Shown: in pieces, positions 2,846 through 39,168 of the stretch
Layout of the letters: every line of letters starts with the position of its first letter
Position numbering within the stretch: position 1 is the stretch's first letter
Made by a program: the position numbers and the translations under genes
The notes under the pieces: model-generated
The model's database searches: none
The model's input: only the letters and a program-made list of their open reading frames with translations
Told to the model about the DNA's origin: nothing
NCBI GenBank assembly: GCA_024704765.1
Contig: JAKMXF010000277.1
Span: 62,001-126,000 of the forward strand
Source of the DNA: Oopsacas minuta
Taxonomy: Eukaryota > Animalia > Porifera
DNA length: 64,000 nucleotides
Direction of reading: 5' to 3'

Positions 2846-3004
2846 CTTCGCGAAATATGTTGTGTTGTATTTTACTAAGAAATTGTAGGAGTTCAGTATT
2901 GTAAATAGATTTGTATATTAGAAATACAAAAGTAACTTCAGATTGAATTTTCATTGAATATAGCTAAACGGTATCAATTTCAAATATCTCAAAATAGCAT
3001 CAAA

Positions 3005-3769: not shown

Positions 3770-4155
3770 TAAGAATGAATTCTAACATTATAATCCGGTT
3801 ATGTTCTACATTATGCATAATTGTATATAACTGGTACGTACTTTTCTAATTTTAATTTTTATAAAAGTATTTATTTGAAGTGTTATTATTGATGCATTTT
3901 TAAATATAGGCCAGCTTTTCCGTCTGCTTTTGAGCAGATATAGTGCATAGTGCGGGCTTGAAATATGATAGGAAATTCCAGCTGTGTGTCTCGGACAATA
4001 AAATTATCCCGCTAGAAATTTAAAATTTCTGTATAATTCGCCCATAATCTTGTAATTTTGTTTCCCTTTGGAAATTGCCTTGGGCTATTACTGACTATGA
4101 GTTACCTTATAAATTCGTTAGATTTCGCTAGTCGCTGGCAAAATAATTCTAATAG

Positions 4156-7100
4156 ATGGTATTCGAAACTGTATTGGTTGATATCCTCAACCGATTCCTC
4201 AGTCCATACGTGAAGAATTTAGACTCTTCACAGATTCAAGTCAGTGTCTGGTCAGGAGATATTCGTCTAGACAATCTGGAAATCAAAGAAAATGCCTTGG
4301 AACAGTTTGAAATTCCAGTTCGTGTACATTTCGGTTTCTTAGACAAATTCAGAGCAAAGATACCCTGGAAGAATCTTTACAACGAGCCGACTATCGTTGA
4401 AATTGACGTGAGTACTTACGTTGCGAAGGGTGCATTGCAGTTTTCACCCGTCCTAACTATTATCGAACTACTAAGAAAAGTGCCTGCTCAGAAATCCTGG
4501 ATAATCCCTTGATCCAAATATGTCTACAGTATACCCCATGAGTTTATTAGTTATCATTTACTATCTTTTATTTCTCTAGGGTCTCTATATTATCGCTGGA
4601 CCAAATTCAGCATTCAAATTCGATCCAACTAAAGCTGAAGAAGAAGCAAGGAACAAGAAACAGAGGGAATTGGAAAAGTTTAAACGTCTCAAAAAGAATA
4701 AGAAACAAAAGAAAGAAAAACAAGAGGAGGCCCAGGACCAAAGTTTCACAGAGAAAGTCGTTACTCAGGTTCTTATAATTTATTTATTATTCAATCACAC
4801 AGTCAATTCCCTATTGAAGCTCAAGGAACCGCGATAATTACTTCCATATATGATTATCCTTGTTTGATATTACGGGAGTTGACTGTATCTGCCTCACAAA
4901 TGCCCTAATTATTATTGTGACCCATACTTTTCCTAATAAGCATTCAAGCATATTAATTCTATTAATTATTACGCTTGATTTAATAATCAGAGACTAGCTA
5001 TATTCGTTCTATGCAATTATTTTCCATTATCAACATACTAATATACCAAGGATGATATCACGTGGCATACCTCATTATTGAAGACATAGAAAGTTAATTA
5101 GTATAATCATACAAACCAAAACAGGTCATTAAGAATCTACAAGTTACTATCAAGAACATACACATCCGCTATGAAGACACACACACTATCCCAGGTAAGG
5201 TATTCGCAGCTGGAGTCAGTCTCAGTGAACTAATTATGCACAGTGTGGACGGCAACTGGCAAGTAAGTTAATTAAAAATTGAAATTACAACCACCCAATA
5301 TGTATATATTGTAAGCTATATGGCTGATCTAGTGTGGATTATATATAATACTATAGAATTCATAGCTAGGTGGCACAGCTTCTGATTCAGCTAATAGTAT
5401 AATCTACAAACTATTCGACTTGAAATGTCTCGCTCTCTACTGGAATGTCATATCACAATCCTACTACTTGATTAATAATAAGAAAGAGGATCTACTCAAT
5501 GTGTTGAAAACAGATATTGCAGACGTCTCTAGACTACCTACGAATCTCCAATATATATTGATGCCTGTATCAGCTAACGCTAAGGTAAGTGAATTATTGA
5601 TGAGAACAGCATAATTGCCAACTCCCTCCAGGTATCCTTTGATTTATCTGAGTTTTACGGGTGGAATAGGGGAAAAAGCGTGAAATTTCGGGAAATCCTC
5701 TTTCGGCAGGTGAGTTCATATTATTCATTGAAATAGGTACAAATCGATACTAAAGCTGGGCAGGATATCAACATCCCACAAGCCCTTGTCAATATCCAAG
5801 TAAATGAACTGAATCTTAACATATCTATTGAGCAATATAGACAGGTGCTTTCGCTACTTGAAGAGTTTGATCGTCTCAGTAGAAACAAGCCCTACGCTAA
5901 ATTTCGACCTGAAGTTCCTCTGAAGAAACATTCAAAAGAATGGTGGAATTATGCGATCAATTCTGTGTTGTCAGAGATTCGTCCCAAAACTCGTGAATTT
6001 ACATGGGAGCATATCAAACATCATCGTGAGATGTGTAGAAGGTGAGTTTGACAATATATCTATGTGTGTGTCCTAGACCTAAGTAGGCTGTTGAGTTGAT
6101 CTGTGTGGGGAATAAAGTCCACCCAAAGTGACCCTAGTTGCGCTTTCACGATTTGATATTGGCTAATGTGTGCACCAATTCGCAAGATTAATCGCCGTTT
6201 TTCGTTTCAGATATATCGCCAAGTATGAGAAGAAATTACTTTCCACAACTTCCAACCCAGAACGTAGCAAAACCATAGCAATGTTGGAGAAGGAACTCGA
6301 TGTGTTTAATATATTGCTGTGTCGTGAGATTGCAGAAGAGCGAGCTGCTAAATATAAGAAGCAAAAAGCATTGAAAAAGGAACAATCCAAGTCTACTTGG
6401 TCATCATGGCTAGGCTGGGGTGGAAGTGGTAAATCAAAATCAAGAGATGATGACGTAATAATCGGTGACATAAATCTTGGATCAGCTGGAGAACTCGATG
6501 AGGAGAAGAAAAAGTTTTACCAAGCAATTGGATATTCGGAGGGCACAGTGCCTGGTAAAATCAACGCACTTCCCAAGGAGTATGTAGCTTATAAACTGAA
6601 TTTCCACATGAGCAAGTTGATTCTAAATCTACGTGATCAAAATGAAGGTATCGCCAAACTTACAACAGATAATTTCATCACTAATGCTAACTACAGGCCT
6701 ACTGCTAAAGGCTTGAATTTCCACACTGAGGTAAGTTTCTAAGGCATAAGGTATCTTAAGAAGATGGGGCCACTAATTGAATACTTATATTCCAATAGTT
6801 CTCAAGTGTTGTCATAAGCGGATGTCGGCGTGGCACTCAGCGACCTATCATTTTACGCAATACCAGCTCAATGAGGACTAGTACTAATGTTCAACGTCCG
6901 CTATTTGCTCTCAACTTCGAGATGAACCCTCTCAATTCCAAATTAGACTTTAGAATAGGAGCATCTCTACAGCCAATTGAAGTAGTATATGATGCTAAAA
7001 CTATTGATAGTATAATCGGTATGTTCATTATCCCACCAGAGATTCATCTATTGGATCTCCGCAAGGCTGCTCTTGCTACTGTTGAAGATATCAGAACTAT

Positions 7101-10100
7101 GTCTCGTGCTGGACTACAGTTTGCTATTCAGAATCGTACCATCATTGAAATTGAGGCTAGTTAAGTAGTAACTTTAGTCCATGCTGTTCGCAACAATGTA
7201 TCTCATAATTACGAGTATTCCAATTATATTTAGGTTGATATACAAGCACCTTACTTCATAGTACCCGAGAAAGGCGAGTATATGCCTGATACACATAAAA
7301 TGTTAATATTTGACCTCGGCTGTCTACACATCACATCTGATACACAAGATGCTCTCTCACTTGATGTCAATACAGCTACCCAAGAACAATTGGAATCTGC
7401 ATTTTATGACAAATTCAATGTTAGGCTAGATAACCTACAGGCTTTAGTAGCTGCGCCTGGCCAGGACTGGGCGAAAGCCAGACTACAGTATGATGACTTG
7501 AAATTACATCTTATTAAACCTACAGGTATATAGACTACTATTTTAGAAAAGGGCTCAATTTATGAAAATCCGATTTATATAGGATTTGAATTGGCTGTTT
7601 CCAAGAGCTTGATCCCTAACGACACTCGACTTCCTAACCTGAAAGTTAATGGCATTATCAAGGCATTAGAACTAACATTATCAGATCGTAAGATACAGTC
7701 TCTCACTGAGATTATTCTCAGCCTCCCGCTACCACCACCTAGCTTAATTGACCATGCAACACAGGTAGATATACAAACCTTTGGGCAGCATATTCCTTAG
7801 AAAGTAGCTATATACATATTTCACACCTTTTTAGGTAGCTACAATGTCACCACCAATCCAAGCCGCGCATATCCAGCGAGAAGATGAATTCGATAACTTA
7901 TACCAAAATCTAAACCTGAAATCAGCAAATGATATATTCATCAGTGCTGAAGAACTAGATGAGACCTCTGATTTCTTTGACGCCAAGTCACTAGATAGTT
8001 CTAGTGATACAGCTAGCATCACTACAGTATCTTCTACTACTTCATCGGATACTTTTGGAACTGATGAACCTCAGCTGCCAACATATATTAAGGTTTGTTA
8101 TGTTTCTAAATACTGGTATAGCTTTTTGAGTCAAGTAGCGATGTTTCTATAAATCAACCGTTCCTAACCATTTTCACCCGTGGACCTCATGCCGTCGTCC
8201 GTTGACCACCAAGGGTCCATCCACCTCAGGCTAAGAATCGCTTCCCCCTATTTATCCTTAACCAACACAGATAACCTACTTTACATATAAAACGCATAGT
8301 ATATGCTACAATACACCAGCAATATCAGTCACTTAAAATAACGTAATACTATGTACATTGTACGAATACTATAGAATGTTACTAGTTTTCAGCTGCTTCC
8401 TGTTCAGCTGTTAAATCTAAGAACACCTGCTCGAGTGTAGTCTGTGTAACTCCGTAGTTTTCAACAGGATTCTTCGCTTCCTCCATACAAGCGAAAATTT
8501 CTGATAGTTTAGCTGCATGTTGTGGGATTTTAAAGTTAATCATCCCTGTGTGTGACCGAGAAATCTTATTCTCAGGAAATCTAGCAGATATGTGTTGTAT
8601 CAACTCTTCTTGACCCTGTTTACACTTCACTGTCAGTGTGTATCCACTGCCGAATTTGTTCTTCAAGTGTTGTAAAGTACCCAAGCATTTCATCCTACCA
8701 TTAACCATTATCGTCATTCTATGACATAGCGCTTCGCATTCCTCCATACTAAATAACAGTGGAGTAATACATACGAATTGCTTTTTGGAAGGAATCTTAC
8801 CTGTGAGATGTAATGACAATACAATGTCCTTCTTGACTGTATTCCGTGAGTGTGTCCCATAACAATCTCTTAGAGACAGGGTCCATACCAGAAGTAGGTT
8901 CGTCTAACAGGACCAATGGCGGGCCTCCAACCAACGCTATTCCTGTGCATAGTTTCCTCTTGTTACCGCCACTATAACAGAAATTCTATATAACATTTTC
9001 CCTAGCAATTTTGCTCTTGAATGCTTACCTATATGTTCCACATAGTCTATCTTTATACTCGCTTAGATATAGCCTCTCTATGATCTCATTAACAGCCAAG
9101 TTAAGACCTGGTCCTTTCAGACCTCGTATTCTACCGAACATGAGCAACACTTCTCTGCCAGTCATTCTGTCGATCAGTGCGTCGTATTGTGGACAATATC
9201 CCATTAAGTGTGATGCCTATAGAGGTTCAGATTGTTCATGAAATATTTGAGAAATACAAACAGCTATACCTTCTCGATTCCATATCTCAAGTCTATTCCG
9301 TTGATAAACGCTGCCCCTGAAGATATATCTTCGTCTCCTGTTATCATTTTGAATGTACTGCTCTTACCAGCTCCATTCTGTCCAAGCAATCCGAATATTT
9401 CTCCTCGTTTCACTTCTAAGCATAAATCATCTACCGCTACTATTGTTGGAGATCGATCGCACACTGTAAACGTGTTTCTATATACCTAAGAAAGTTATGA
9501 AAAATATCAGATTTTGCCCATATTTGAGCATTCCGTCGAATGGTTAGCCAACCAACTCACTTTCCCAATATTGTAGAGTGTAAGTATATTTCCATCAGGA
9601 TTCCATGTAGTGTAATATGACATGTCCTCTGTTGTGACATTAGCCTGCTCGTTGAGTACATCACTGTCTACAAACGCACCAGTCCCACTTCCATTCGCGT
9701 CGACGATATATCGTGGTCCCATTTTGTGACATGGAGACATTATTAGCTTGAAAATCTTCTGTATAATATCTAAATTGTATACAACATAAACGAAACTTGT
9801 TGAAAGCGAAGTACCCTATTAATGCCTTCTGCGAATAGTCAACTCACTGGATTCTAAGATATATAGTCCAAGCAGAAACACGAAGCCTTCAATCACCATT
9901 GCAATAACAAACCTCCCAATACCTGGAGTCTCCAAAGCCAAAACTACATCTTGGAATGCTATACCACTTAATTTACAGAATTCCCGAGTTTCTGCATTTT
10001 CAGCACAAATATTTTTGTAATAAGTGTTCGCCACCATGTCAGATAAGGCTTGCCCTAGACAGTAGTTGGGCATGAAGAGAAATATCTAGAGAACATAGTG

Positions 10101-13100
10101 TAATTCCCAATTTCCCAACGATTTACATACAAACTTACCCATTTCATGATATCTGATGCATCAGTTAATTGCAAAACTTCCAATAAGAATATAATTAGCA
10201 CTGCAGCACAGCCAGTGGCTATATTGAACAGTACAGTAAGAACGAAAGCTGTGGTCGCTGTATTGAAGAAGTATGAGAACAAATACATCAACGGGATAAT
10301 ACTCCAGCCGTACAGTAGAAGTAGCAAAGCAACTACAGGTAAGTTTTCGTCTTTATAAGCTGGCACTTGAAATGCCGCGAATAGAATTAGGATAAACACA
10401 CAGGGTACAACATAGTTGATAATATCCCATAGGAATCCTGACAACCAGAATGAAGAGAGATGCACACCAGACACTCGCTGTATGTGTTTAGCCTTTGAAG
10501 ATCTTTCGTCTACAACGAATACTACGAAACTGCTGGCTAAGAACGCCATACCGAATACCATGTCAAACGCTACGGAAAATCCAACCCCAATCCTAAGAGA
10601 AAAATACATCAAATTGAATTTTCCCGCCCAAAATCGTGAAGAATGAACTAGACTTACCCTAATAGACTGTCTGCCTGACTTTTAAGATCAGCAGGTAAGG
10701 GAGCATTATACCCTACAATCTCGTCATCCTCACCTCCAGGTATCGACCTTAACAGACTGTTATATACCTGATTAACAGCAAGAGGTAACATGTGATAGCC
10801 TTGATTTGAGAACCAAACAGTTACATTAGGGCCTCTATATTCTGCGCCGAATTGGTAGGACTGATCAACATCAGTGTTAGACAATTTGTTGTATTTCTTT
10901 AGTATAAAGTCTTCCATTTGTGTACCATTGCTCGCGTTCATATACAATATATTAGCAGATGAATTTGTATTGAGATAGGATTGCATTGCTTTATTTCTGG
11001 ATTGTGCTAGAGAGAATGGAACAATTATATATATATATGTATATTGCCCTATTCCAAGAATGCCTCAGATTGACTTAATGCCTACCTGTCGTTGATAAAT
11101 CCGAAATGATTGGAATATTGCTTTCTCTGTACAAATTCGGTGTCATTTGCAAAGCTCTCTGCTCAGACATACCTGGAGCAATTATACTAACAACAAGAGC
11201 TAGTAACGTGAATATACATGGGAGTAGTAACTGTGGGATGATGGCCTTGTAATTTCTCGTTGTGTTATGAATTCGCTTTACAAACATTGCATAGAATTGT
11301 AGGAACCAGAGATTGTGGCCTGTTACAGGTCTCAAACGGTGCGGCTAGAAAGGCAAAAACGTTCGTGAATACAGTGTTAGAATTTGGCGGATATAACGAG
11401 ACATAAGGACTTACAGAACTGAGTGGTGAGATCTCACTGATCTTCTCTTTTGTTGGAGTTTGTCTAGAGTTCTGTATAGCAATCTTAGTGCGTTCAATAG
11501 ACACATTATTTAGTGATATATTCGGGTCAATCTTGTCTATCATGATACTATTAGGCTGAGCATTCCCATTAGAGTTTTCTAAGGCCAGATGTCTTCCTGC
11601 TAATAGTAATTCCAACTCTTCATCCTCTTGAGATCCAACATGCAAGAATACCTCCTCCATTGTTGTAATACTTACTCCATAACTCGTTATTCCATAGTCT
11701 TCTTTGTTGTTTTGTAATATGTCGAACATGGTAGGGAATGCCTGTAAATTCAAGAGTGTATACATCTTTGATTCAACCATGCAAACTGAAAACTCACTTG
11801 ACTCCTATTTTTGGGCAGAATGTATGTCAATTCAGCTCCTATGTTAGACTGTAACTTAGCTTCAGGCACATGTTGAGTAATGAGTTGTGTGATGGCAGGA
11901 ACGTTGCAATTTGGCTCTTTTACACAAGTCATATGATAGCCAACTCCAAACTTTGATTTCAGGAACAAAGGACTCCCACAGCATCTATATATGAAATCCA
12001 AAGTTAAATGCTTCCGAAAATTTCTTCTATACACTTACTTGATTTTTCCAGATGCCATAATTGCTATCCTGTCACCTAAGAAATCAGCTTCATCCATGTA
12101 ATGTGTTGTCAGCATAATTGTTTTGTCTTGTTTGTATCTAAGAAGAAGATCCCATGTATCTCTTCTTGCACCAGGGTCCATGCCTGTTGTTGGCTCATCC
12201 AATATAACAACCTGGAAATGTAGGTAAAAAATCAATTGACTATATGAGGATCGTTTCTACAAACTTACCTTGGATTTTCCAATGAGTGCGATACCAACCG
12301 ACAATTTTCGTTTCATTCCTCCGCTAAGATTCTTTGTGTAGACTCTAGCCTTGTGATAGATGCCTAGTGCAATCATTAATTCAACAGCCTCTTCTTTTAC
12401 ATCTTTCCAACTTAAGCCTTTGAGCATTCCAAAGAACCATAAATGTTCCCTTACCTAGAAAAGACAGCATTCGAATAACTAACCATATTGTGGTGTAGTA
12501 GTTGTAATTTACCGTCATGTTGTCATAGAGTACATCATGCTGTGGACATAGTCCTAGACTCCTTCGGACTTTACTTATCTGGCTACGGATGTCAAAATTG
12601 TTGACTTCTGCAGTCCCAGTACTAGGTGGGTATATCCCTGTCAGCATTGACATCGTTGTAGTTTTACCAGCACCGTTGTGACCTAAAAGAACTGTAATTT
12701 GGTTCTTGTACATCTTGAGGTTGATTCCGTCTACGGCCTTCTTTTTCTTTTGTCCTAGCCCTCCGAAAGTCTAAACATTTCCTAATCAATCTTACATATT
12801 GAATGATTTATCGTTTACTTACCTTGCTTAAGTCTATTATTTCTATGCCAACTTCATTATATTTCGGTTCAGATTCAATGAATTCACTTCTATCCTGTAT
12901 TCTCTTGGTCAATTTCTTTTTCGGCGTGTACCAATAGGATGGCATGCAAAGGAAATAGAATGGCTTTGGTACACCGAAATCTCCAGGAAACACGTTGTCA
13001 ATATACCAAGCAAGAATTGTGTAAAATTTGAAATCAAACCATAGAATAATCAAGACAAACATGAGGGAAAATTGATCACCAGGAATCGGGCTGGTGGACA

Positions 13101-16100
13101 CGCTACTGAAACTAGCGCTATCACCTCTCGCTTCGAATTCTGAGAAAAGTCTTGAACCGAGCGCCAGCGCAGTGTTTGAGAATAGACATAGTATTATCTT
13201 CACTTGATAAGGCAACTCATCATAGGTTTCATCACTTTGTATGAAAAAATACGGGCAATACGTCATGAAAAAAATCACTCCAGACATGACCGTAGCAACA
13301 TTCGTTTTTGAAAATAGCGTAGCTAGAAGTGTAGCGAATCCAATTGTTGCCAACGTGTACAATAACAGGAAGAGGAAAAACAATGCATTGCTAGCCCAGA
13401 TGAATATGCCTCCACCCACGATTAAGATCATGACCATAATAATAGTGACTAGTAGGAAAATGAAATTTTTAAGGAACCATGCGAGTTTCTGTGCTATACC
13501 TGAAGCTCCCATGATTTTCAGTGATTCCTAAAAAAGAGAAATAATCAGTAAAATTTGGCTGTCCTCGCCTCAAAAAAGTGAGATATGTAAGAATATTGTC
13601 AGCACAGTAACAAACCTTCAGTTTTTTCTCTTTCTCATAAACGAGAGATCTAACTATGAACATTGTTGGTATAATGAATGACAACATCAATAACAGAGGT
13701 AACCCATAAGCCAATGCCATGCTGAAGTCGTATTCAATATATTTGCGATATGGATACCTAGGAATGCAGATATAATTATTAATTGCCTGCTTATTTGGCA
13801 AAGCTGTCTACTTACTGTTGTATCTGTATGTTCAACTCTGGATATGAGGAATCTGGATTGAGCTGTTCGTATCTGTATCTTAAGATTGCTTGTTCCAATG
13901 CCGCTTGTACTGGCAAATATCCTTGATAGATGTATCCGGGTTTGTCACCTGTCAAATTATCATATTTGACTCTGGGACCTTGTCCTGCTATTCTTGGAAA
14001 TAAAATATTTGTCCTCCAATCACCTAATATTTAATTCATGAGAAAATGTAATAATAATTCCTAGAAATGATATAATTACTAGCGAATAACTAACCACTTG
14101 GTGATTTTAATGCTTCTGTTGCATTTGAATCATTCTTGAAGTCGATATGTTGTAATTTCTGAATCAGAGCTAGTATATTAGTAACATTAAATATTTCTTC
14201 CAATTTCGAAACATTTACAAATGGCCGTAATTTGTCATCAAACCGTATTTTATACTCGAATTGTATGCTATTTGCTTTCTTCGTGTTGTTAAGTGAGATT
14301 CCACCCAAATATTTCGAATAATAGAATTCATCAGAATCGTTCTTTTGCGAATCTAAGAAATTTACCATTTCACTCTCGTTTTTGCGAAAATCAACATCAA
14401 TGAACAAATTCAAGAAATACCCCATAGACTTGAATCTTTCCGCGATATCTCGAACTTCCCTTGTATCTGGCGCAAACAAAATTATCTTTTTCGAGTTTTG
14501 CAAACTAGTTGGCATTGGAAAAACCATTGGTGCAATCGTTGCTAATTTCATGTCAATATCTGTTGAATTATTTATCGATATCGGGTTCCATCTTCTCTCC
14601 TCATGATGTATCTGTACGAACTGATATCTCAAGGCTACTAATACTGCAATGTATGCAACTGGTAGGATGAGCTCGAAAATGGTGAATACCCAACTTCTGA
14701 ATTGTAATATGAAATTCTTGATAAGAAGCAAGCCAACAGTTCGAAGGAAACTGAAGCAGCCCATGTCTAACTACAAATAAATCAAAAGTTATTAATACAG
14801 ACACTATTATACAAGGGCATTTATAATAGTTAGCCAATTGGCATTGAATATTATAGGCAGTCAAATTTGAGCACGTGGAATCTGATACTATTTAAATCCA
14901 CTTCGTAAACCCATTAATGCATCATATATCATAAAGTCATGCGTTTTGGCTCTGAGGAGCTATCAAACACTACGAAGCGTGAAACACACACATGACTAAT
15001 ATAACATCCAAATTAATAAGATAACACACATAGTATATCCCTCCCATTCGATTCGGTCATCATACGTTGTTCGCCTTATGATTAGTGTAGAGTAGAAAAT
15101 ATGGTTAGCGCCTTGTTGGATCGATTTTAGATAAATGAACAAAGATTGTTTGTAATCGCTTGTCCAGTCCAAGGTTGCACAATAATACACAAGGTTTTGA
15201 TATATTTTACGAATTCCTTTCTAAAACTCGCCCGCTCATAATCTTAATAGATTTCCCATCATACCACCAAGACGATAATTATCACCAGACAGCACAGCTT
15301 GTAATTTGCCTAAGTTTTCTAATTTATTATAACCTGCTTAAAGCACCGTTATCACATTGGCACTTATAATCTAGGTGTATACCATTGTCTTGAACACGGT
15401 GTGGTGTTTAGCGACAAAAAGAAATATGAAATATGATTTTACAGTGATTTCGCGTGCTAAAGGGTAATTTTCGCATTTGCCGCCAATTTTTCGGAAACGA
15501 AATCCAATCTGTGGGGGGTAACACATGAAAATTACTGATCTTCTATGTAAACTTCACAACGCCTATGCCGATTTAGGTTTGTTTTTTCTTGTTCAGTTGC
15601 TTGCTGACATCATAATAGAGAAGATTGGAATCCTAATCACAAAAGAAGAGCAAGAAAAAGAAATTCCACAATTACTCCTAGAACTCAAAAATGGAGTAAT
15701 TCACATGAAACAGCGTACATGGGATCTCATACTGAATTCTGAACTCGGTGTGCTAAAAATGTTGGACCTAACAACCTTCAAGCCTGGTACTAGGAATGAA
15801 CCATTAGCTCTGATTTCTAGTGAATACGATAACAAAGTATTTTCTGTTGAAGTGTGCATAGCCGAGAGACAATCACCTGAATATCATACTCATTTCAATT
15901 CAACACACAAGACTGTTCGCCTCGTAACATACCCAATGCATTTTGGCTTGCATAAAAATTCTCTTTTCAATGTTACATCTTTGTTAGTTTCACTCTTGCC
16001 ATCTGTTGAGAGCACTAAAACTTCTAATCTCGCCACACAAACTGTCGCTAGTGTAAATCAAATTGACGACGCTATGGAAGGAAATTTGGGCTATAAGCCA

Positions 16101-28100: not shown

Positions 28101-31100
28101 AGAACGTCTTATTGTTTTTAATATGGTCAAGTTTCTGTTTCGGCTTGTCTTCCAACGGCACGGGGTTGGTCATATTCAAAGGTACGATAGCGTATTGCCT
28201 CTGTGGGCCAGTTGCAGGCGTTTTCGAAGCTAAATATTCCGCTTCTTCCATGCATTTGTCAATATTTATATCTGGTAAATCTGAAAAGAGAAGAATGCAA
28301 TCATTGAACCCAAAAGTTAACAGATTCGATTTCAATTGCCAAAGTATACCCAAACCAATAAATAGTGGAAATGTACTGTTATTGACCAGAAGTTTATTCC
28401 AGATTAAAAAGATCTTTTCAAGTGGGAATACATGTGTGAAAACCGTTAGAAACCATGGAATAGCGTACAACTCCGGTTGAAATCCAATATCGAATAGATG
28501 GTTGTATAATTGCGGTGCATGGAAGGCAATTAATTGTGAGAAGACAGCTAGATATTCCTGCATAACAGGCGAATTGTCTTTGAGGAAGAAATTGTGAACA
28601 TATTTGTCAATAAAATTTAGCATAGAAGCGTATGCAATTGCCTCGCGATGGAAGTTTACTACTAGGAATGTGGCAGCTAAGGAATCTAACCCTTGCCAGT
28701 ATACCAACTCAATTTTTGTGTTCAGAAAAGCTTTGAGAAGTCTTTTCAGCTTTGAATGCCCTTCTGAGGATGCGAGAAACTCGTTGTACTGATGACAACG
28801 AGGGATGTCCACCTCAATTTGCCTGTCAATTGGTGATTCGCTTTCTTTATCAACTTCATCGTAGAGTTTTTGATAGTTAGATTTGACATCAAGCAAAGCT
28901 GCCCAGATTTGAGATCGAAACAATGGACATATATCCTTTTTGCTTTCGAGTTTGATCTGATCCTTGGTATGAGGATAACCTACATAGTTTAGTATCGTTA
29001 ATATTCATGGTATAAGATTACCTTGGATTATTTATGATTATAAGACGGAAATTCCATGCTAAAACCATGCACAAATGTCTAGTTTCTAACCACCTTCGAA
29101 ATTGGCAAAAAAAAAATCACTAATTTGAAATTACTCACTTTCCAACAATCTTCTGAACAGTATCACCCTATGAAATTGATACTCTACATCTTTCTCCTTG
29201 ATTGAAGCAGGCAGTCCAATAGAATCCTTAGGTATTTGTGGTGGAATAGATTGATCTGTTAAGATCAATAGCGGATAGAAATCAGGTGTTGTTAAGTGAT
29301 TCAGCCTCTCGTTGAGCTTATCCATACTGATCGTAGTATGTTGATCTATAAGGATTCAGATGGAATTCTGTTAGCAGTCTAGACCCTTTCTGTACATGTA
29401 GCTCATATACCAATTTTAACAGTCTGTGGACCCCCTGCTGTCGTCCGAGGGGTCCATGTACCCCATGTTGGGAACCGCTGGTCTATACCATAACACTTGT
29501 TTTCGTTATCTTAACTAACCTGTATACAGCATCAATATTTCCTTTTCCTTCCCGAAACTTTCTTTATTTTTGGTGATAACTTGAGGTAGCGAGCAGATTG
29601 GAGCTTTTGACTGTACCAAGCCGTTCTTTTCCAGTTCATGCAATAGATCACCACCTGCTAGAGACCACAGGAAGAACACCTCGTGTATGTCACGTTCCCC
29701 TAGTAAACTTTTAAAACTATCTACTTCTCCATTCTGGCCTTGTATATCAGTTAACATTTGCGTGAAAATGCTGATATCAAGCCTTTGTGTTCGATTCTGC
29801 GTTGATTCAAAACATGTTGGGATTAGTGGTAAATTCGGTGAGGGCTTAATTGTATCTTTTAGGAACGGATGTTCTAAAAGATCCCTTGGACATGGCCGCA
29901 TGCTCGCATCTGGGTTCAAACATTTGACCAGAAAATCGGTTATTTCCTGTGGTATTGAGAAGAAGAGCGTTGGTGCTTGCTGTGTGTCGAATAAGAATTG
30001 AGGTATTGACATGTTTTTGACGGTTGTAAGGTGTAGAATGCGTTTGCAGATGTTTGTGAGTGAATTTCTCCGTGGAAGGTCGGACCATATTTGTTTTCCA
30101 ACAAGAGCTTCCATTAATATAATGCCTAAGATAGATTTTATCAAAAAATTCAGAATATTTAAATCTCTAATTATTACTTACCCAAACTCCATATATCGAT
30201 ATTAGTATTCTTTCTGTATCTTTCCTTCGCTTCTTGACCTTCTCTAATGAGCTCAGGCGGCCAATACACAGGAATACCAATTGGAAATTTAACATATTCA
30301 CCGTATTCAGTTACATAATACATACCGAAATTCGACATCTTTATTTCACCATTACTCGTAAGCTGTACGTTTTGACTTGATAAATTCCTGTTGATCAATC
30401 CAAGTTCATTCATATGCACCAGGCCAGATACAATGCTGTATCCCAGCCGTCTTACTAATGCAAGGTCACAGGAAAAGTCTCTCAGCACATCTTTGTTTTC
30501 TAAACATCTTTGATGATACTCACTGACTATCAACATTCTATTCTGTTTACATCTCTGTATCCAAATGTATTGACATAGATTTGGGTGTCTGATGCCTTTT
30601 AGCTTTTGAAAACGACCCACAATGTTGATACTTGTAGGTACGAGTGATACTCCATTTACAGGGCCACGATTGATTAGAGCATTTGTCGCAAAGAATGATA
30701 ATATTCCAATATCAGCATCTCCATATAAGGACATTGCTGAAAATTGTGCAAAAATAATGTTTGTTAAATTAGGTAAAAAGATTAGTCAGGGTTTACGGAT
30801 AACCCTTTGGATGAAATCCATTCCTTTTATCAGTGATCCCAACCTGGGGTTCATGGACTCCTTGGTGGTTCACAGACGACAGCAGATGGCCGAAGGATCT
30901 CAAAATCTGCATTGCAGTGTATGGAAGAGGATCGACAGAATGTGCTAAAATTCGTATAGGGCTCAATGGGTGAAACAGGTTGGGGCCGTATATGATGTAA
31001 TATCTATCATCATATCATGGGATTTATCAAGTGTATGTTCTATTTCTCAAACACTTCCCTAGAGTAGGTGAAATGGATGGAGTCATGTGCACACTTTCGA

Positions 31101-34100
31101 CCCTGCATTTTTATAACCTACCATGAATTGTTAAATTAACATCGAATCTATTATGAACGAGCTACATTTTGTTGGTCCTGAGGTTGTATAATAATTCTAT
31201 GTTCATTGTCTTGACTTATGGTTGAATAATTATCATCATGGTTAATTAAGTTTGCAATATATTCACAATCTTGGCTTGCCTTAAAACATGTACCATATGG
31301 TTTCAAAGTCAATTTACCTACACAAACACAATCACCATTATACATAATTGCCATTAACTTCTAAGCTTTGAACTACAAACATGTAAGAGTATAGCAGTGC
31401 TTTCATCTCGTAACTTATTCAATTCTTACTTCTTCTGACTCATTATATATGTAGTTAATTTGCATTGTAAGAAACTTGCATTTTCTATTAGGTGTCGTGT
31501 ATCAGCCAGTGAAAGGAGTAACTGAAGAAGGTGCAGTTGGATTAGTAAAAGGAATTGGTAAAGGTTTGATCGGAGTTGTAACCAGGCCACTCGGAGGCGG
31601 CGTGGATCTATTAACAGCTACATTTGGAAGTCTCCAAAAAGCTGTCAGTGGTGATAAAGTACTGGTAAAGAAACGCCACCCACGGTTTATCGGGCAAGAT
31701 AAAGTTATATCAGTAAGTTATGTTTTATCCTGTGTTACGCCAGTGTATTTAGCAAACTGATTTATATACAGTTTGGGCTGACTAATACAAGGCGGATATC
31801 ATTTCCACTACGTTTTACCTATAATGCCTAGGCATGGTTTGTGATATCTGCTTACGAACGGCAGTATCCACTTATGTACAAAACACAAGCCTGATTATAG
31901 CACTTAACATAGTGTGCTAGCTCTGTCAAGATTCTTGCTTGCAATTCAGTTAAATCAGTTAGATTTCAGCTGTTCCCAAACATTATCACCCGTGGACACC
32001 TATGCGGCTATGCCAATTTTGGGACCCTCTTGATCTCCCATATACTGCACCCCTTGCCGTTGTCCAGGGGGTCCATATGCCCCAGGTTGTGAATCGCTGA
32101 GCTAGAAGTATCATGATAAAATAATCATGTGTACAGTTCCATAAAAAAAAAATTTGAATACAATTAATTCTTAGTAATACTGTTTTCGTGTTGATGTTCC
32201 CTCTCTTCTTTGTGCGAATGTAGGTTTTCTTCGAAATTCAATTCAATTTCGTTTGTTTCACCTAATATAATTGAATTACCTTTTTCGGTCAATTTATCCA
32301 TTGTCTTATTCCAGTCGTCAATCTGTAGAATATTTCTATCTTCTTTCATAAACATTACAGTATCATTTAGACTCTTTTTCATATTTTTTTCCCAAACCAG
32401 ATCATCGATAATATCTGTTACAACTACATTTGGTTCAACCACGTAATCGACATCTACAGGTACAATCATTTCCTGTTGAACAAATAGTTGATTATCCCCT
32501 TCATATTGGTAATGTTCAATCAGCATAATAGCAGGACTCGATAACAGGAAAACAACTCCCATAATCAGGATAAATATAGCACCCTTCACATTATCATCTT
32601 TCGTAGATTTTATAAACATCATTGATGGGACGATAAAGCTTAATATCGCTCCAGCATAACCACCAGTAACATTCAAAATAACTCCAACATTGGGCACCAT
32701 CATTGCGATAATCATTGACCCAAAAATAATCAGGAGGGTAATGAATATAAAATAGAATTTGGGAATGAAAATATCTGACCTTAGTTGCCCTCTTGTAAAA
32801 ACGAAAGAGTAAATACATGATCGCATGGGTAATATCACCATAGGGTAAGATATGATTACACTTATGCAGAATGCGAGTCGAAGTATTTGGTGTAAAAACG
32901 AAGTGGAGAGGTTACGAAATATATCTGTACCGATTAATTCGCTTACAAATGTGAAGTACCCGAAAATTCCAACGGTAGAGTATATAATACAAACTAGTAG
33001 CATCGCTCCTATTACTAATGGTTTGACGCCACTTACGCCTTTCATGCTATCTGGAAAGGTTTCGAGGTATATCAACATTTGCGATTGACAGGAAAAACCG
33101 GTTAAAATGATCGGCATGCATATGAAAACTCCTTTCAAATCGAATAACTTCACATTGGGATGAAATACATTTGTTCGACCAAAATAAAATGCTTCAATAA
33201 AAAGATAAATAATGAAAACAGCATACGTCAACAGGGAAAATACACTGAATGGCACCAAGCTTGATGCATCTCGTATAAGGCAAAGCGGTAAGATAATAAA
33301 TACTGCGACAAATGTGACAACTTTTTCACGAAATAAAATCCCTTCTTCAATGCTTGGAAAATTTGCCTTCAAAATTGTTGGTATAATATCTCCAATAATT
33401 ACAAATGATGCAACTCCAATGCCAAATATAAACGCTATGATACAAGTTGCAATGAAATATTTTCCAAATCGACCATAGATGTTTTCTGCAGTTGTCTCGT
33501 AGGAATTTGTCGAAGTAATAAGTGCTGCCTTTAGTAGAAATATTGATGATTCCACACTCATATATCCTGCGATAAATATCAATATTACTCCGAGTATACA
33601 ACCACATTGTTCAATGCAATATGGCATAGCAAGCATAGGAACCCCTAACATAGAATTGCCAAGGTTTAATACGTAGGGTAATGTATAAGAGTCGTACGAC
33701 ATAATGTATTGGTGATTGTTGCGAGCAGTCAGTGGATTTTGCCTTACTTTTGTATGTTTGCTATTGAATTTCTCGTTCATATGGTTTTGTAAGAATTATA
33801 ATCTTTTTGTACAACCAACTATAAAGTACATTGTTCTATCCGCACCTAAATCATTGATATGAAATTTGTTAATGTATATTTGGGACATTTTTGTATGAAA
33901 GTATATTTTGTATAACCCCGTTATCACCATCATTATTATCAGCATCTTATTGGAACTACAAATATGATCTAATTATGACTTTTATATTCCATTCAGAAAA
34001 TCTACATTTTTGTTTATTTGTCCAATTAATTACGTAACAATTATGTATGCACTAAGCAACTAGATTTCAGTGATAATTATGTGTGAGATCAGACGTAGAA

Positions 34101-37100
34101 ATTTTGTACATTTGTGTATGTAATTATGCTCTCAATGACTGGAGCTTGTAACAATTAATGAGCCGAATATGCAAAACAGATATATATGCCCTGTTTGGTG
34201 TAAAAAATAGCGCTGTTATCATCATTTCCTTGGTTTTTAGCTAATATTGCATTCAAGCCATAATCACTCGTAGATTGCACTACGTCTCTGCTTAACAATA
34301 GAACGAAACACCATATAACCTTTCTGTTGTATTCTACATAGAGTTTATTCTCCAGAGATCGTCTATAGAAAACCTAATTTATTCATTATTGTAATCATAT
34401 ACAAACAGTTTTATAGGCATTTGAACCCATAATACTTCAATGTAATTGTTATGGACCCATTATTCAACATAGTCCTGTATATACTAGTTCACGAATTTGT
34501 CTGTTCGTTATCGAATTTTTCCATTACGTTTTGCTCCGTAACATACGTTTTGGTTTAATTTTAATTATATATTACACAACTAAATATACCTCAGCAATTC
34601 GTAAGGAATATCCAATCAACCCATCACTAGTATTCGTTTTATAATGATGTGAATAAATTGTGGTTAATTAATAAAAGTTGTCATCTCAAGTTTACCCTGC
34701 ATAAAGGCTACATCATGTGTGGTCTATGTATTGCCTTTCCCATCACCCAGTGTATTTACTGCTGATATATATAGGTGTGCAATCGCTTAGTATAAATATA
34801 GTAATAATTTCCATTATTCAAAAGTGAATTTATCTATACTTCCATTTACCTACAATAGCACTGCATTATTGGTGTATAGCCCAGTCAATTTGAAAGTCTT
34901 TTCACAACACAAAATGACACATAATCCAAGTACAAGCGCTTCAGCTCGCTCAGAATTCCAAGTTGGTGGAAAATTCCGTTTAGTCCGTAAGATCGGCAGC
35001 GGTTCATTCGGTGATATATATCTCGGCGTGAATATAACAAATGGAGAAGAAGTTGCCGTAAAGTTAGAGTCTTTGAAGGCTAGACACCCTCAGTTACTAT
35101 ATGAGTCTAAATTATACAAGATACTACAGGGAGGAGTTGGTATTCCACATATTAGATGGTGAGTTTATGAAATATGTATTCAATTATACATTATTGAGTG
35201 ATTTATGACTGAATTCTGAAAGTTCTTTGTATACAGACCCCATCCCAATTCTCCCTAATTACTCCATTATTCCCCAGGTATGGCCAAGAAAAAGACTACA
35301 ATGTCCTAGTGATGGATCTGTTAGGCCCTAGTCTAGAAGATCTCTTCAATTTCTGCTCACGTCGCTTCACAATGAAGACAGTCCTTATGCTAGCTGACCA
35401 GATGATCGGTCGTGTCGAGTATGTACATAATAAGAATTTTATTCACAGAGATATCAAGCCTGATAACTTCCTTATGGGGATAGGTCGACACTGTAACAAA
35501 CTGTTTTTGATTGATTTCGGTTTGGCAAAGAAATACCGAGATACACGTACAAGACAACATATACCATATCGAGAGGATAAGAATCTTACTGGCACAGCTA
35601 GATATGCTTCTATCAACGCTCATTTGGGTAAGGAGTATTGTGAATATTTGAGTCTTCATTTTATTCCTACGTTACTATGGTAACTAATATAGACTGATTA
35701 ATTATGACGTCAATACGTTAAATATCCAATAAATACAGTATATTTAATATATTGTTTACACAAAGTATGAATTGTATGCGAATCTTGTAATAATGAATTG
35801 CAGCATCAAATTATGTAAATTCTCTATTCAGGTATTGAACAGAGTCGGAGAGATGACATGGAGAGTTTAGGCTATGTTCTAATGTATTTCAATCGTTCAT
35901 CTCTACCATGGCAAGGCCTGAAGGCTGCTACAAAGAAACAGAAATATGATAAAATATCTGAGAAAAAGATGTCTACACCTGTTGAAGTTCTCTGTAAAGG
36001 ATTCCCAGCAGAATTCGCTATGTACCTCAACTACTGCCGAGGATTAAGGTGAGGAAAACCGCAATTTGTCTGTAACCGAGTTTAGTGATACATGTTTTGA
36101 CAAAAATGATCCCTATATGCTTATTAGCCATTTAACCATGGATGATGGTTTTTGTTATTTATGTTATACTAATCCACCTCCAACCAAACGAGTAGTATCC
36201 CAAATGACCTAGAACAACATCCAAGCAGATATACTAACTCCACCATCTATGGTTAATATCTAAAAGCATATACCATTTTATCATGAAACGTTCGGTTTAG
36301 TATACGATTTCTAACTAAATTACCTTGAATGTAACATCTGTATTGATTATCAACCAGCAGTTTTTTTGAGATAATTATTAAAGGCTGATGACATATAAAT
36401 CATTCTTAGTAGAGTTAGATTTAATATAAAGGATGACTTAAATGTAAAGTCACTAATAGAATTCTGGTTAAATGTTGTCAATTATATCATTACTATGACA
36501 GCTAATTGCTGATATTAATAAGGCTATGATCCTATCAATTTGGACACTTTCCAGGAATTGATTCATGTCCAACACAGATAGAACATTCAGTTAACTTTCA
36601 AAGTGCCAAATTGTCTTGGTAGATTGTGTTCTAATTGTTTCCATGATATTTTTGCCAATTTGAAATTAGCCAAAACATTAATTACAAGTGCTTCAGTTTA
36701 TCCAAATATGGTGAAATATTGTGTACTTTATTTGTACACTTTTATGATGACGCATTCAATATATTTTGATGATTAATTTCTTTTGATAAGTGTCCTAGAG
36801 TCTAGACGTGTAATTTTGCTTCGAGAACAATTGTTCTATCGAATCGTAAGTATCGAACACTTCCTTGATTCAGATGGTAAAATACTCTAGCATCACTAAT
36901 ATCGGAGTAAAATTATTGAATTCGAAATACCACGCGTTGAATACAGTGAAACCTCCTATAGGCTATGAAATCGGGGAACTTCTGGAAACGAAATGAAATG
37001 AAATATAGCGAATTCCTAGTCTTGTATAAATTGACGTCCACACAGGGAAACGGGGTAGCATTTTCGGCCTCCCTGGTTACAATGTATATATACAATATAA

Positions 37101-39168
37101 CGCGTATTGATTATATACTATTTCTCCTTAGATTTGAAGAAGCCCCTGACTACATGTATCTCCGTCAACTATTCCGTATTCTATTCCGTACACTCAACCA
37201 CCAATACGACTACACATTTGATTGGACAATGTTGAAACAAAAAGCAACCGCACAAAGTACATCGAGCTCCAACTTGACACCCGGTATACCACCTTCAACA
37301 GGAATTCCACTGATGCCAACTTCGACAATACCATGTGGCGTCGGGACAAGCGCAAAGCCCCCAGCCTCCCCAGCGATGCAGGCAACACCAGAAGATCTGA
37401 GACGGGATAGAATGAAATTCGATAAGGATTCATTAAGTAAAAAGATCTAAGAAATTTAAATAAAAGTACTTTTTACTGCCTTCTCTCTCATACACACAAA
37501 ACACACAGTATAAAGACCTTCAATTTTCAATTGACTTTCGATCATGAAATGTGCATTTGTTCTGCACGAATACATTGTTAATTACCCCCTAGTTAATTAC
37601 TGTTTACATTCTCCTATACCCTCACCTATCAACGCTAACTGTCTATCTTATTATGTTAGAGAAACTTACTTTGACTATTTGCTAATTAAACGTCTCAACA
37701 CACGCACACACATGGTCATAATTCGACCAGTTGCTACCATGAAGACATTTGTGCCACATACAGAGGTGCCGGATGAATACAAATCATAAGCCATATCTAC
37801 TATATACCCATTTGAAATATGAATATTTAAATCAAATCCATGAAAATCCATAAATTTCATGGTTCTGATGGTCCAAGGACTTTAGAGAATCCAAATCCAT
37901 CCGGCCTCTCTGGCCACGGACGACAGCAGGGGTCCAGAGGATCTCAAAATTTGTGTTACGCTATGGGAAGGGTTAAATTTGTATTCACAAGGTGAACACG
38001 GTTGTAAACATTCGGTTTAAGAAATGGCATTTTCGGTGAAATATCCGCGAGAATTATTTTACGATCTCTTCACGTAGGTTTAATCTTACCAACATATAGC
38101 GGACGAATTGAGCCATTTCCTTGTATATCCGCTATAATTAAGGTATAGCTATTGCATTATAGTTCTACAATATATGTAAATTTGTCGATATATCAAAATT
38201 CAGCTGACATGTCTTCCCTTCCTCCCACATTTCGTTCCACCACCCAATCACTATAATATTCTGTAATTATTGCATTATTCATGTGCACGATGTCTCTAAC
38301 TGAGTTTCAATATGGTTACGTGGTTATTAGCTTTTGAAACATGTGTAGTTTCAGGTGATTTCTATGTGTTAGTAATTAATAATTGCTTGCTGATTAGAGT
38401 AAGTGATTTGATTGCAGATTTACTTGTTAACGGGGTTTGACGTATTCTATTGTTCTTATTATTATTGCATTTGCAAGTTATTGATTGTATACGTACGTCT
38501 ATGTATGCTGACCTATACTACATATGCTCCAGAGATCGATCTTAGAATTTCAATTTTCAGTTTCCTTCAACTGTACTCTGCCCCTGAGAACTTTCGAAAT
38601 CGTTGGATTCTTGAGAAATTCACATTTTGTCTTGCTATCTAGTATTATCTACAATTTGTTTAGTGATACTAATATATTTCCTGTTTTATATGCATAAACC
38701 TTTGGAATTTAATTTTTGACATATTTTCAAAATTCAATTAATTCCCCCTTCCCCCTCTAGGTCTTCGACTTACAATCAGCACTAGGTAATTTCATTCTGA
38801 ATGACATAGAAAACGCTAAATACCTCCGTACACTCGTATACAAAGGCCATCTACTCATAGAAGAGTCTAAAAACATAGCAATTTTTATTGTAACAAACAA
38901 ATTATTAATTAAAGCCGAGCGAAAGAACTTCGACCCATTGAACCCGTGGAAAGATGAAGCTATATACCCGTTCGAGGAGATTACTCATGAGATGGACTTA
39001 TCGCTAGATGGGAAGAAAACAATATTAATTCTTCATATTGTGAAACATAGAACTTTGTTTTCACACGGTAAACCACGTGTAATGATATCAACATCTGATC
39101 ACAAATCAGCTGATATATTCGCGGCACAGTTTAACCAGGCTCTCGCGGAATTTAACAGCTCCTATTAG
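4156..39168 (+). CDS. VPS13: VPS13A/C-type bridge-like lipid transfer protein, 22 exons, about 4,020 aa; host of five nested genes
   Basis: Chorein-N start [15 protein letters not shown]...IPWKNLY; C-terminal ATG2_C-like GLDVIGNP...FYEPYQGA...[10 protein letters not shown] and a final PH-like exon. Exons: 4156-4407, 4580-4768, 5125-5262, 5366-5584, 5737-6041, 6211-6730, 6799-7155, 7234-7525, 7583-7764, 7835-8092, 15597-22602, 22658-22909, 23021-23277, 23668-23847, 23903-24083, 24323-24477, 26316-26474, 26781-26960, 27059-27275, 27389-27523, 31492-31712, 38761-39168. All junctions are phase-compatible and sum to 12,063 nt (4,021 codons). Confidence 0.92.
4800..4885. mobile_element. TA-targeting MITE, family B (TIR CAGTCAACTCCCG-like)
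   Basis: cagtcaattcc ... cgggagttgactg followed by TA. The internal gaagctcaaggaaccgcgataattacttc is the reverse complement of the segment near 39480 and 49620. Lies in VPS13 intron 2. Confidence 0.6.
8155..8243 (-). mobile_element. hAT (Charlie/Buster-like) MITE, family A, degenerate internally deleted copy
   Basis: caaccgttcctaaccattttcacccgtggacc ... aagggtccat ... aagaatcgct matches the ends of the copies at 31967 and 50497. Confidence 0.55.
8382..14764 (-). CDS. Full-length ABCA-subfamily lipid transporter (ABCA3-like), multi-exon, nested antisense in VPS13 intron 8093-15596
   Basis: N-terminus [26 protein letters not shown]1: [40 protein letters not shown]2: [39 protein letters not shown]-terminal [13 protein letters not shown]. 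Many short GT-AG introns. Confidence 0.93.
24511..24673. mobile_element. TA-flanked MITE (Tc1/mariner/pogo-type ends), 163 bp
   Basis: TA|cagtcgaactcggatacga ... tcatatcgagttctactg|TA: imperfect TIRs of about 18 bp with TA on both sides. Confidence 0.65.
24979..26062 (-). CDS. Orphan S/T/P-rich protein, about 297 aa, three exons, nested antisense in VPS13 intron 24478-26315
   Basis: Exons 26062-26023, 25961-25565 and 25435-24979 join in frame (894 nt) through a 61-nt GT-AG intron and a 129-nt GC-AG intron (AG|GCAAGT). No domain recognised. The 5' end is uncertain. Confidence 0.55.
25199..25327. repeat. 30-bp tandem repeat, about 4.3 copies, encoding [10 protein letters not shown]-like decapeptides on the minus strand
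   Basis: ggagattgtagtgagggtgtgttatggtaa is repeated head-to-tail with few substitutions and no spacers. Confidence 0.95.
27736..30734 (-). CDS. TBCK: TBC1-domain-containing pseudokinase TBCK (kinase-like + TBC + rhodanese), 4 exons, nested antisense in VPS13 intron 27524-31491
   Basis: Start [16 protein letters not shown]...[19 protein letters not shown]; [16 protein letters not shown]...YWQGLDSL...[11 protein letters not shown]; rhodanese [10 protein letters not shown]. Exons 30734-30182, 30125-29520, 29345-29139, 28979-27736 (2,610 nt, about 869 aa). Confidence 0.93.
29385..29480 (-). mobile_element. hAT MITE family A, partial, inside TBCK intron 2
   Basis: ...ggacccc ctgctgtcgtccgagg ggtccatgtaccccatgttgggaaccgctg|gtctatac: one intact TIR followed by an NNNTANNN flank. 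Confidence 0.7.
30831..30990 (+). mobile_element. hAT MITE family A, about 100 bp upstream of the TBCK start codon
   Basis: cagtgatcccaacctggggttcatggactcc ... gacgacagcag ... ggatctcaaaat ... ggtgaaacaggttgggg shares blocks with the copies at 37913 and 45268. Confidence 0.7.
31967..32099 (-). mobile_element. hAT MITE family A
   Basis: cagctgttcccaaac ... ccccaggttgtgaatcgctg: both TIRs present, degenerate. Confidence 0.7.
32164..33780 (-). CDS. SLC38A10: SLC38A10-like amino-acid transporter (AAAP family), intronless, nested antisense in the last VPS13 intron
   Basis: [46 protein letters not shown] and YPMVILPMR match the SLC38A10 transmembrane core; 538 aa. Confidence 0.8.
   Translation of the reverse strand: MNEKFNSKHTKVRQNPLTARNNHQYIMSYDSYTLPYVLNLGNSMLGVPMLAMPYCIEQCGCILGVILIFIAGYMSVESSIFLLKAALITSTNSYETTAENIYGRFGKYFIATCIIAFIFGIGVASFVIIGDIIPTILKANFPSIEEGILFREKVVTFVAVFIILPLCLIRDASSLVPFSVFSLLTYAVFIIYLFIEAFYFGRTNVFHPNVKLFDLKGVFICMPIILTGFSCQSQMLIYLETFPDSMKGVSGVKPLVIGAMLLVCIIYSTVGIFGYFTFVSELIGTDIFRNLSTSFLHQILRLAFCISVIISYPMVILPMRSCIYSFVFTRGQLRSDIFIPKFYFIFITLLIIFGSMIIAMMVPNVGVILNVTGGYAGAILSFIVPSMMFIKSTKDDNVKGAIFILIMGVVFLLSSPAIMLIEHYQYEGDNQLFVQQEMIVPVDVDYVVEPNVVVTDIIDDLVWEKNMKKSLNDTVMFMKEDRNILQIDDWNKTMDKLTEKGNSIILGETNEIELNFEENLHSHKEEREHQHENSITKN
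34914..37450 (+). CDS. CSNK1A1: Casein kinase 1 alpha, 4 exons, nested on the same strand in the last VPS13 intron (31713-38760)
   Basis: Near-identical to CK1-alpha motifs ([14 protein letters not shown]...[72 protein letters not shown]). Exons 34914-35158, 35278-35627, 35832-36048, 37132-37450. Confidence 0.96.
37913..38005 (+). mobile_element. hAT MITE family A, internal fragment
   Basis: ccacggacgacagcaggggtccagaggatctcaaaatttgtg matches the internal blocks at 30860-30910 and 45290-45330. Confidence 0.55.

Follow-up and report, generated by a model that had tools for sequence, protein, structure and literature searches.

A glass sponge VPS13 gene very probably holds five independent genes in four of its introns

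The window analyzed here is a 64-kb stretch of contig JAKMXF010000277.1 (assembly GCA_024704765.1) from Oopsacas minuta, a glass sponge (Hexactinellida). Its plus strand carries a VPS13 gene, which we modeled with 22 exons from 4156 to 39168, a locus of 35,013 nucleotides (nt). The coding sequence of 12,063 nt encodes 4,020 amino acids (aa) and contains one stop, the terminal one at 39166-39168. Exons 11-16 were placed by exact mapping of the deposited protein P0001 onto the DNA, exons 17-22 were taken from RNA-supported joints, and exons 1-10 were resolved by open frames, splice sites and conservation. The parts of the host gene, together with the four introns that contain other genes, are listed below. 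In this list, X4 is a sequencing run taken as RNA, since its contigs are spliced; L002, L003 and L004 are loci from three independent ENA assemblies (contigs of 193-747 kb), and L005 is an extension of one of them.

4156..8092, plus strand: VPS13 exons 1-10 (chorein or VPS13_N region, aa 1-904); Pfam VPS13_N on three open reading frames (ORFs)
4156-4407, 4580-4768, 5125-5262, 5366-5584, 5737-6041, plus strand: VPS13 exons 1-5
6211-6730, 6799-7155, 7234-7525, 7583-7764, 7835-8092, plus strand: VPS13 exons 6-10
8093..15596, plus strand: host intron 10, 7,504 nt, phase 0, ABCA gene inside; GT..AG, conserved in four assemblies
15597..24477, plus strand: VPS13 exons 11-16 (aa 905-3581); Pfam VPS13_M and VPS13_VAB, mapping of P0001
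15597-22602, 22658-22909, 23021-23277, 23668-23847, 23903-24083, 24323-24477, plus strand: VPS13 exons 11-16 one by one
24478..26315, plus strand: host intron 16, 1,838 nt, phase 0, orphan inside; loose end of an X4 contig, sites conserved in L002-L004
26316-26474, 26781-26960, 27059-27275, 27389-27523, plus strand: VPS13 exons 17-20 (aa 3582-3811); RNA joints
27524..31491, plus strand: host intron 20, 3,968 nt, phase 1, TBCK inside; X4 joint, sites conserved in L002-L004
31492..31712, plus strand: VPS13 exon 21 (aa 3812-3885); RNA joints on both sides
31713..38760, plus strand: host intron 21, 7,048 nt, phase 0, SLC38A10-like gene and CK1-alpha inside; loose end of an X4 contig, L005
38761..39168, plus strand: VPS13 exon 22 (aa 3886-4020 and the stop), C-terminal VPS13_C domain; Pfam, L005

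Small introns make up 17 of the 21 in the host (55, 55, 57, 68, 70, 78, 98, 103, 111, 113, 152, 169, 172, 239, 306, 356 and 390 nt). The four large introns total 20,358 nt, and all of them have GT..AG ends and a pyrimidine tract. The reading frame is joined in phase 0 at 8092>15597, 24477>26316 and 31712>38761 and in phase 1 at 27523>31492. A preliminary description, made from the letters of the window alone, had given the coordinates of the large introns, in-phase joins, small introns of 55-390 nt and about 20.4 kb of large-intron sequence in a locus of 35 kb; all of these numbers match the 22-exon model. Exon 11 (15597-22602) is 7,006 nt long and contains 2,335 of the 4,020 codons, or 58% of the coding sequence. 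Toward either end, by contrast, the gene is divided into small exons. In L004, the borders of exons 4-10 lie at matching positions with canonical sites, and the same was found for exons 8-10 in L003. The donor of intron 7 (7156-7233) is GC in O. minuta (GAG/GCTAGT), whereas the L004 orthologue has GT at the same codon position (GAT/GTGAGT).

The domains follow one another along the host in the order VPS13_N, VPS13_M, VAB and VPS13_C. Pfam VPS13_N was matched by exons 1, 6 and 7 (PF12624 at 4.1e-36 on exon 1, the other pieces corresponding to profile positions 366-690). Exon 11 matched PF25033 (VPS13_M, the middle repeating region; 1.1e-64) and PF25036 (VAB; 1.4e-39). When the short C-terminal exons were searched individually against Pfam, only exon 22 was matched, by VPS13_C (PF25037; 3e-7, 30.8 bits versus a cut-off of 21). 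The PDB matches of the host were human VPS13C, human VPS13A and fungal VPS13 only, with the two human proteins as the best, and by these matches the host appears to be a VPS13 of the A/C type.

Distant full-length VPS13 proteins, obtained in an exhaustive protein search, were used for colinearity only. Two blastp alignments with such proteins together cross all four large-intron junctions. With P0015, aa 1-1418 were aligned at E 1e-157 and aa 1778-3986 at E 8e-152, the second alignment crossing 24477>26316, 27523>31492 and 31712>38761. Exons 17-21 are colinear with the C-termini of full-length VPS13 proteins. The region of aa 1040-1940 gave several overlapping alignments to one region of the reference VPS13 proteins, which indicates extra internal copies of the repeating region. 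The host resembles the bridge-like lipid-transfer proteins VPS13A/C in having the chorein/VPS13_N part, the repeating middle, VAB and VPS13_C in canonical order; it differs from them in its greater length of 4,020 aa, its apparent extra repeat copies and the concentration of more than half of its coding sequence in one exon.

Splicing of the host was followed in RNA using the X4 contigs, which were placed on 26100-31900. The joint 27523>31492 is contained in one contig, in which 3,968 nt with GT..AG ends are skipped and the shorter side comprises 38 letters. Another contig is aligned from 26314 and has a loose end of 108 letters; a 30-letter consensus of this end equals 24446-24475 exactly, which, with the ambiguous letters AG, gives the junction 24477>26316. 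At the other side of the locus, a contig aligned to 31714 continues with 28 loose letters that equal 38763-38790 exactly and, with the ambiguous letters GT, give the junction 31712>38761. The small introns 26475-26780, 26961-27058 and 27276-27388 were also found as GT..AG joints in X4 contigs. These data show that the host pre-mRNA is spliced across its guests at three of the four large introns, as the preliminary description had proposed for 24477>26316, 27523>31492 and 31712>38761. Host and TBCK transcripts are both spliced, and both are present in this one RNA sample.

The order of the genes was compared with that in L002, L003 and L004, in which the big VPS13 exon is 63-77% identical. From this identity and the shared microsynteny, we infer that the three related assemblies are those of other glass sponges. 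Their order is VPS13_N exons, ABCA (minus strand), big exon, small exons, TBCK (minus strand), exon 21 and an Aa_trans gene (minus strand); L005 goes on with CK1 (plus strand) and exon 22, which lies about 7.2 kb past exon 21 and has splice sites as in the window. The counterparts of introns 10, 16 and 20 measure 7.2-9.6, 1.7-1.9 and 3.5-4.0 kb. The sites and phases of these three introns and the donor of intron 21 are conserved in L002-L004, and both ends of intron 21 are conserved in L005. Conservation in the related assemblies amounts to 90-98% for exons 17-20 and 89-96% for exon 21, and exon 22 is 72% conserved in L005, with an acceptor identical in position. Whether the nesting holds in related sponges was a question raised with the preliminary description; the interleaved order recurs in all three independent assemblies. 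Since the nest is common to them, it is older than the divergence of these species.

The genes inside the four introns are the following.

8382..14764, minus strand: guest 1, ABCA3-like full ABC transporter, multi-exon; deposited product of 1,768 aa, introns of about 1.08 kb in total
24979..26062, minus strand: guest 2, fast-evolving orphan; deposited product of 297 aa, about 190 nt of intron
27736..30734, minus strand: guest 3, TBCK, 869 aa, four exons (30734-30181, 30124-29520, 29345-29137, 28977-27736); Pfam and RNA
32164..33780, minus strand: guest 4, SLC38A10-like amino-acid transporter, single open frame of 538 aa; Pfam Aa_trans at 2.4e-42
34914..37450, plus strand: guest 5, CK1-alpha, 376 aa, four exons (34914-35158, 35278-35627, 35832-36048, 37132-37450); Pfam Pkinase, PDB

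All guests lie wholly within host introns, with 212-1,310 nt to spare, and occupy 59-85% of each large intron. CK1-alpha is on the host strand, and the other four (ABCA3-like, orphan, TBCK and SLC38A10-like) are antisense to the host. The gene model, the RNA and the related assemblies agree with the earlier view of one VPS13 with five guests in four introns, every intron above 1 kb being occupied. Own introns had been assigned to three guests, ABCA, TBCK and CK1-alpha; those three were borne out, and, with the apparent intron sequence of about 190 nt in the orphan, probably four guests are split.

TBCK is the guest for which an mRNA was seen directly. Its three introns were found as CT..AC joints in one 2,551-nt X4 contig, corresponding to splicing on the minus strand, and the resulting model has 869 aa and one stop. 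Pfam Pkinase, RabGAP-TBC and Rhodanese matches lie on exons joined by these RNA-supported introns. In the X4 sample, TBCK is thus expressed as a spliced mRNA of its own.

The ABCA, SLC38A10-like and CK1-alpha genes have intact, conserved open frames. Guest 1 was matched by Pfam ABC2_membrane_3 and R1_ABCA1, its deposited gene product also has Pfam matches, and it is kept on the minus strand in L002-L004. In PDB, one 234-aa ABCA exon scored 132.6 bits with ABCA3 and 127 bits with ABCA4, a narrow margin. TTAG, an acceptor-like motif, is present 3 nt before the ABCA ATG (14765-14777). Guest 4 is placed firmly in the Aa_trans family by its Pfam match, and ORFs of 505-521 aa are present at its position in the relatives. 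The name SLC38A10 is offered as a lead, since 'sodium-coupled neutral amino acid transporter 10' occurs among the closest named Atlas clusters, a kind of evidence short of an alignment. For guest 5, one 107-aa exon scored 228 bits with alpha, 196 bits with delta/epsilon and 145 bits with gamma CK1 structures and is thus closest to alpha. Its introns measure 119, 204 and 1,083 nt, an AATAAA is located at 37459, and the exons are 74-100% identical in L005. The SLC38A10-like gene (minus strand) and CK1-alpha (plus strand) stand head to head, 1.13 kb apart (33781-34913), a layout also present in L005. Judging by this arrangement, 33781-34913 could be a shared bidirectional promoter of the two genes.

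Several points weigh against the reading of the locus as one intact host with five guests. No close full-length relative of the host was found in the protein libraries: a word-index search returned exon-sized ORFs only, and an exhaustive search for a close relative returned one close fragment of 171 aa and the distant full-length VPS13 proteins. Each RNA junction is represented by one assembled contig from one run and not by read counts. The junction 8092>15597 is supported by sequence comparison, and a search with the N-terminal 120 aa encoded by exon 11 as the query found no transcript-derived protein fragment that spans it. The promoters, the use of poly(A) sites and the read-through of CK1-alpha are putative. 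Finally, the orphan, a low-complexity sequence without a family, has no tblastx match in L002, the most distant relative. One way to discount the whole arrangement would be an assembly chimera that interleaves unrelated genes. The recurrence of the same interleaved order in three independent ENA assemblies excludes misassembly. In addition, contigs of run X2, which are unspliced and were taken as DNA, tile 26100-31900, one contig of run X1 (which may be source data) spans this interval whole, and the RNA is spliced across the guests. We therefore rejected a chimera, the probability of which is practically nil.

Alternatively, VPS13 could be two genes separated by ABCA, the first encoding an N-terminal chorein fragment (exons 1-10) and the second beginning with exon 11. 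This is how the locus was deposited, with models that end at 8152 or start at an ATG at 15525, and the failure to find transcript-derived proteins across 8092>15597 fits such a split. The sequences around the junction argue otherwise. As modeled, exon 10 ends with ...ACATATATTAAG and exon 11 starts with TTGCTTGCTGAC..., and four assemblies share the donor, the acceptor and phase 0. In the window, L002, L003 and L004, exon 10 ends with QLPTY[IV]K followed directly by GT, and exon 11 starts with [LVF]LADI.IE[KR][IV]GILITK after a pyrimidine tract and AG. Conservation sets in exactly at the acceptor, 15597, and not at the annotated ATG, 15525. Just upstream of this acceptor, L002, L003 and L004 have stop codons and no ATG in frame (with the stop immediately before the exon in the case of L003), which rules out a separate coding sequence that opens with exon 11 at this point. 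Conversely, the read-through tails past the donor at 8092 are unrelated between species. Single blastp alignments with full-length VPS13 proteins cross aa 904/905 (P0015, aa 1-1418, E 1e-157; P0040, aa 2-1413, E 3e-160), and a beetle VPS13 likewise aligns in one piece across the junction. Moreover, the deposited annotation contains further false breaks at 24477 and 27523, two sites for which splicing is documented by RNA. A split gene is thus very unlikely, and we rejected it, as well as a pseudogene. We infer, with strong support from these comparisons, that 8092>15597 is used in host splicing. There may be four protein-coding guests instead of five, if the orphan is a non-coding or spurious transcript in intron 16. 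Its product belongs to no Pfam family, is Pro/Ser/Thr-rich and contains four tandem 10-residue repeats (25050-25250, minus strand), and the missing match in L002 points in the same direction. On the other hand, the deposited annotation calls a 297-aa gene here, and translated matches on the same strand and at the same position were found by tblastx in L004 (40% over 102 aa, summed E 7.5e-27) and L003 (53% over 58 aa, 3.4e-17). Of the words of host intron 16, a share of 0.61, or about 61%, is present in run X4 (words do not give the strand), compared with 0.65 of those of the neighboring stretch, which is close to the estimated exonic share of the latter. The loss of the fifth guest is therefore unlikely, although there is a real chance of it. 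Of the five protein-coding guests claimed at the outset, four stand by their Pfam families, and for the orphan a coding function is probable. Taken together, the locus very probably contains one intact VPS13 of the A/C type, a bridge-like lipid-transfer protein of 4,020 aa, with five independent genes in 4 of its 21 introns, an arrangement that is old in the lineage because it is common to at least four related assemblies.

The deposited annotation breaks this one host gene into several false genes. Coordinates of the deposited locus were converted to window coordinates by adding 5524. VPS13 is present there in at least three models, of 923 aa (end at 8152), 2,736 aa (15525-24585) and 232 aa (26188-27549), and the ORF 15525-22613 (2,362 aa) is 100% identical to the deposited O. 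minuta protein P0001, which is named VPS13C. The false ends of the models correspond to read-through from real donors into introns. Exon 21 (31492-31712) is contained in no deposited model, and 74 VPS13 residues are consequently absent from the public proteome. Surveys of lipid-transfer proteins, of domain architecture and of "missing core genes" that include O. minuta inherit a fragmented VPS13. The practical outcome of our analysis is an annotation fix, in which the corrected model restores the complete protein.

Classical hosts of several guests are Drosophila dunce and human NF1, the latter with OMG, EVI2A and EVI2B in intron 27b. Like them, VPS13 is a large host with several complete genes in its introns, most of them antisense, and, as in those hosts, each guest may be expressed separately. 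In contrast to VPS13, with its other introns of 55-390 nt, those hosts have very large introns anyway. Also unlike them, the guests account for essentially all of the intron bulk of VPS13, and several of the guests are multi-exon conserved genes.

A closer counterpart is found among glass sponges. In Aphrocallistes vastus, 2,432 nested genes (12.4%) were reported, "many of which are conserved" (Francis et al. 2023, PMC10282587). For O. minuta, only 83 nested genes were listed in that study, and low counts were ascribed to the settings of the gene-prediction software (PMC10282587). The paper on the O. minuta genome is silent on both nesting and VPS13 (PMC10280926). The VPS13 nest shares with those of A. 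vastus a compact genome, short introns except around whole genes, conservation between hexactinellids and omission by automatic annotation. It differs in what is documented: the VPS13 locus, its five guests and their conservation are absent from the earlier study, and three RNA-documented junctions and the mis-split models are given here. The description of the locus as an extreme case of nesting was not upheld, since an abundance of conserved nested genes was already known from glass-sponge genomes (PMC10282587). Instead, the locus typifies the extensive nesting of genes that is on record for this group. New are the corrected VPS13 model and a well-documented nest, but no new phenomenon. The locus provides a clean, RNA-supported and evolutionarily conserved illustration of the packing of housekeeping genes, themselves conserved, into introns of another gene in a compact genome.

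The host is very probably transcribed across 35 kb of the plus strand, and, as the RNA shows, the spliceosome removes introns that contain whole genes. The guests would use their own promoters inside the introns. On its way, the host polymerase would cross four antisense genes and read through the poly(A) signal of CK1-alpha. With respect to origin, the genes may have been relocated into introns, which would be among the few insertion-tolerant places of a compact genome, and then retained.

Trans-splicing may contribute to guest expression. The X4 contig of TBCK contains 20 foreign letters, and the point of fusion is a TTTTCAG acceptor that lies 2-5 nt before the ATG (30735-30741, minus strand). 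A nearby 5' exon was considered as their source and rejected, as no match with up to 2 mismatches was found in the 64-kb window. Spliced-leader trans-splicing has been reported for glass sponges (A. vastus), and the 20 letters look like a spliced leader added in this way, which suggests that leader trans-splicing acts on a guest. TAATAG, with an acceptor-like TAG, is located directly before the VPS13 ATG (4147-4158). We considered whether CK1-alpha is made partly from host pre-mRNA, in an operon-like manner within the intron, by leader trans-splicing at the 5' end and polyadenylation at the AATAAA at 37459. Against this possibility, which is very unlikely, CK1-alpha has no acceptor-like AG close to its ATG, the first AG being found 18 nt upstream. 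Within the 15 nt that precede the ATG of the SLC38A10-like gene, no AG occurs. If such a mode were true, it would perhaps also apply to same-strand guests genome-wide and would help to explain why glass sponges tolerate nesting. With CK1-alpha on the host strand and its poly(A) signal, the locus is convenient for tests of transcriptional interference and spliced-leader trans-splicing.

Two further observations were made around the locus. Run X5, which has another organism label and belongs to another study, contains unspliced contigs that are 95-99% identical to 26785-31804 and differ from it by numerous substitutions and small indels; the source is probably DNA from a close relative or from a divergent Oopsacas population. 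Upstream of VPS13, 386 nt separate the start codon from the end of an ORF of the fatty-acid hydroxylase family (2954-3769, plus strand; Pfam 2e-29).

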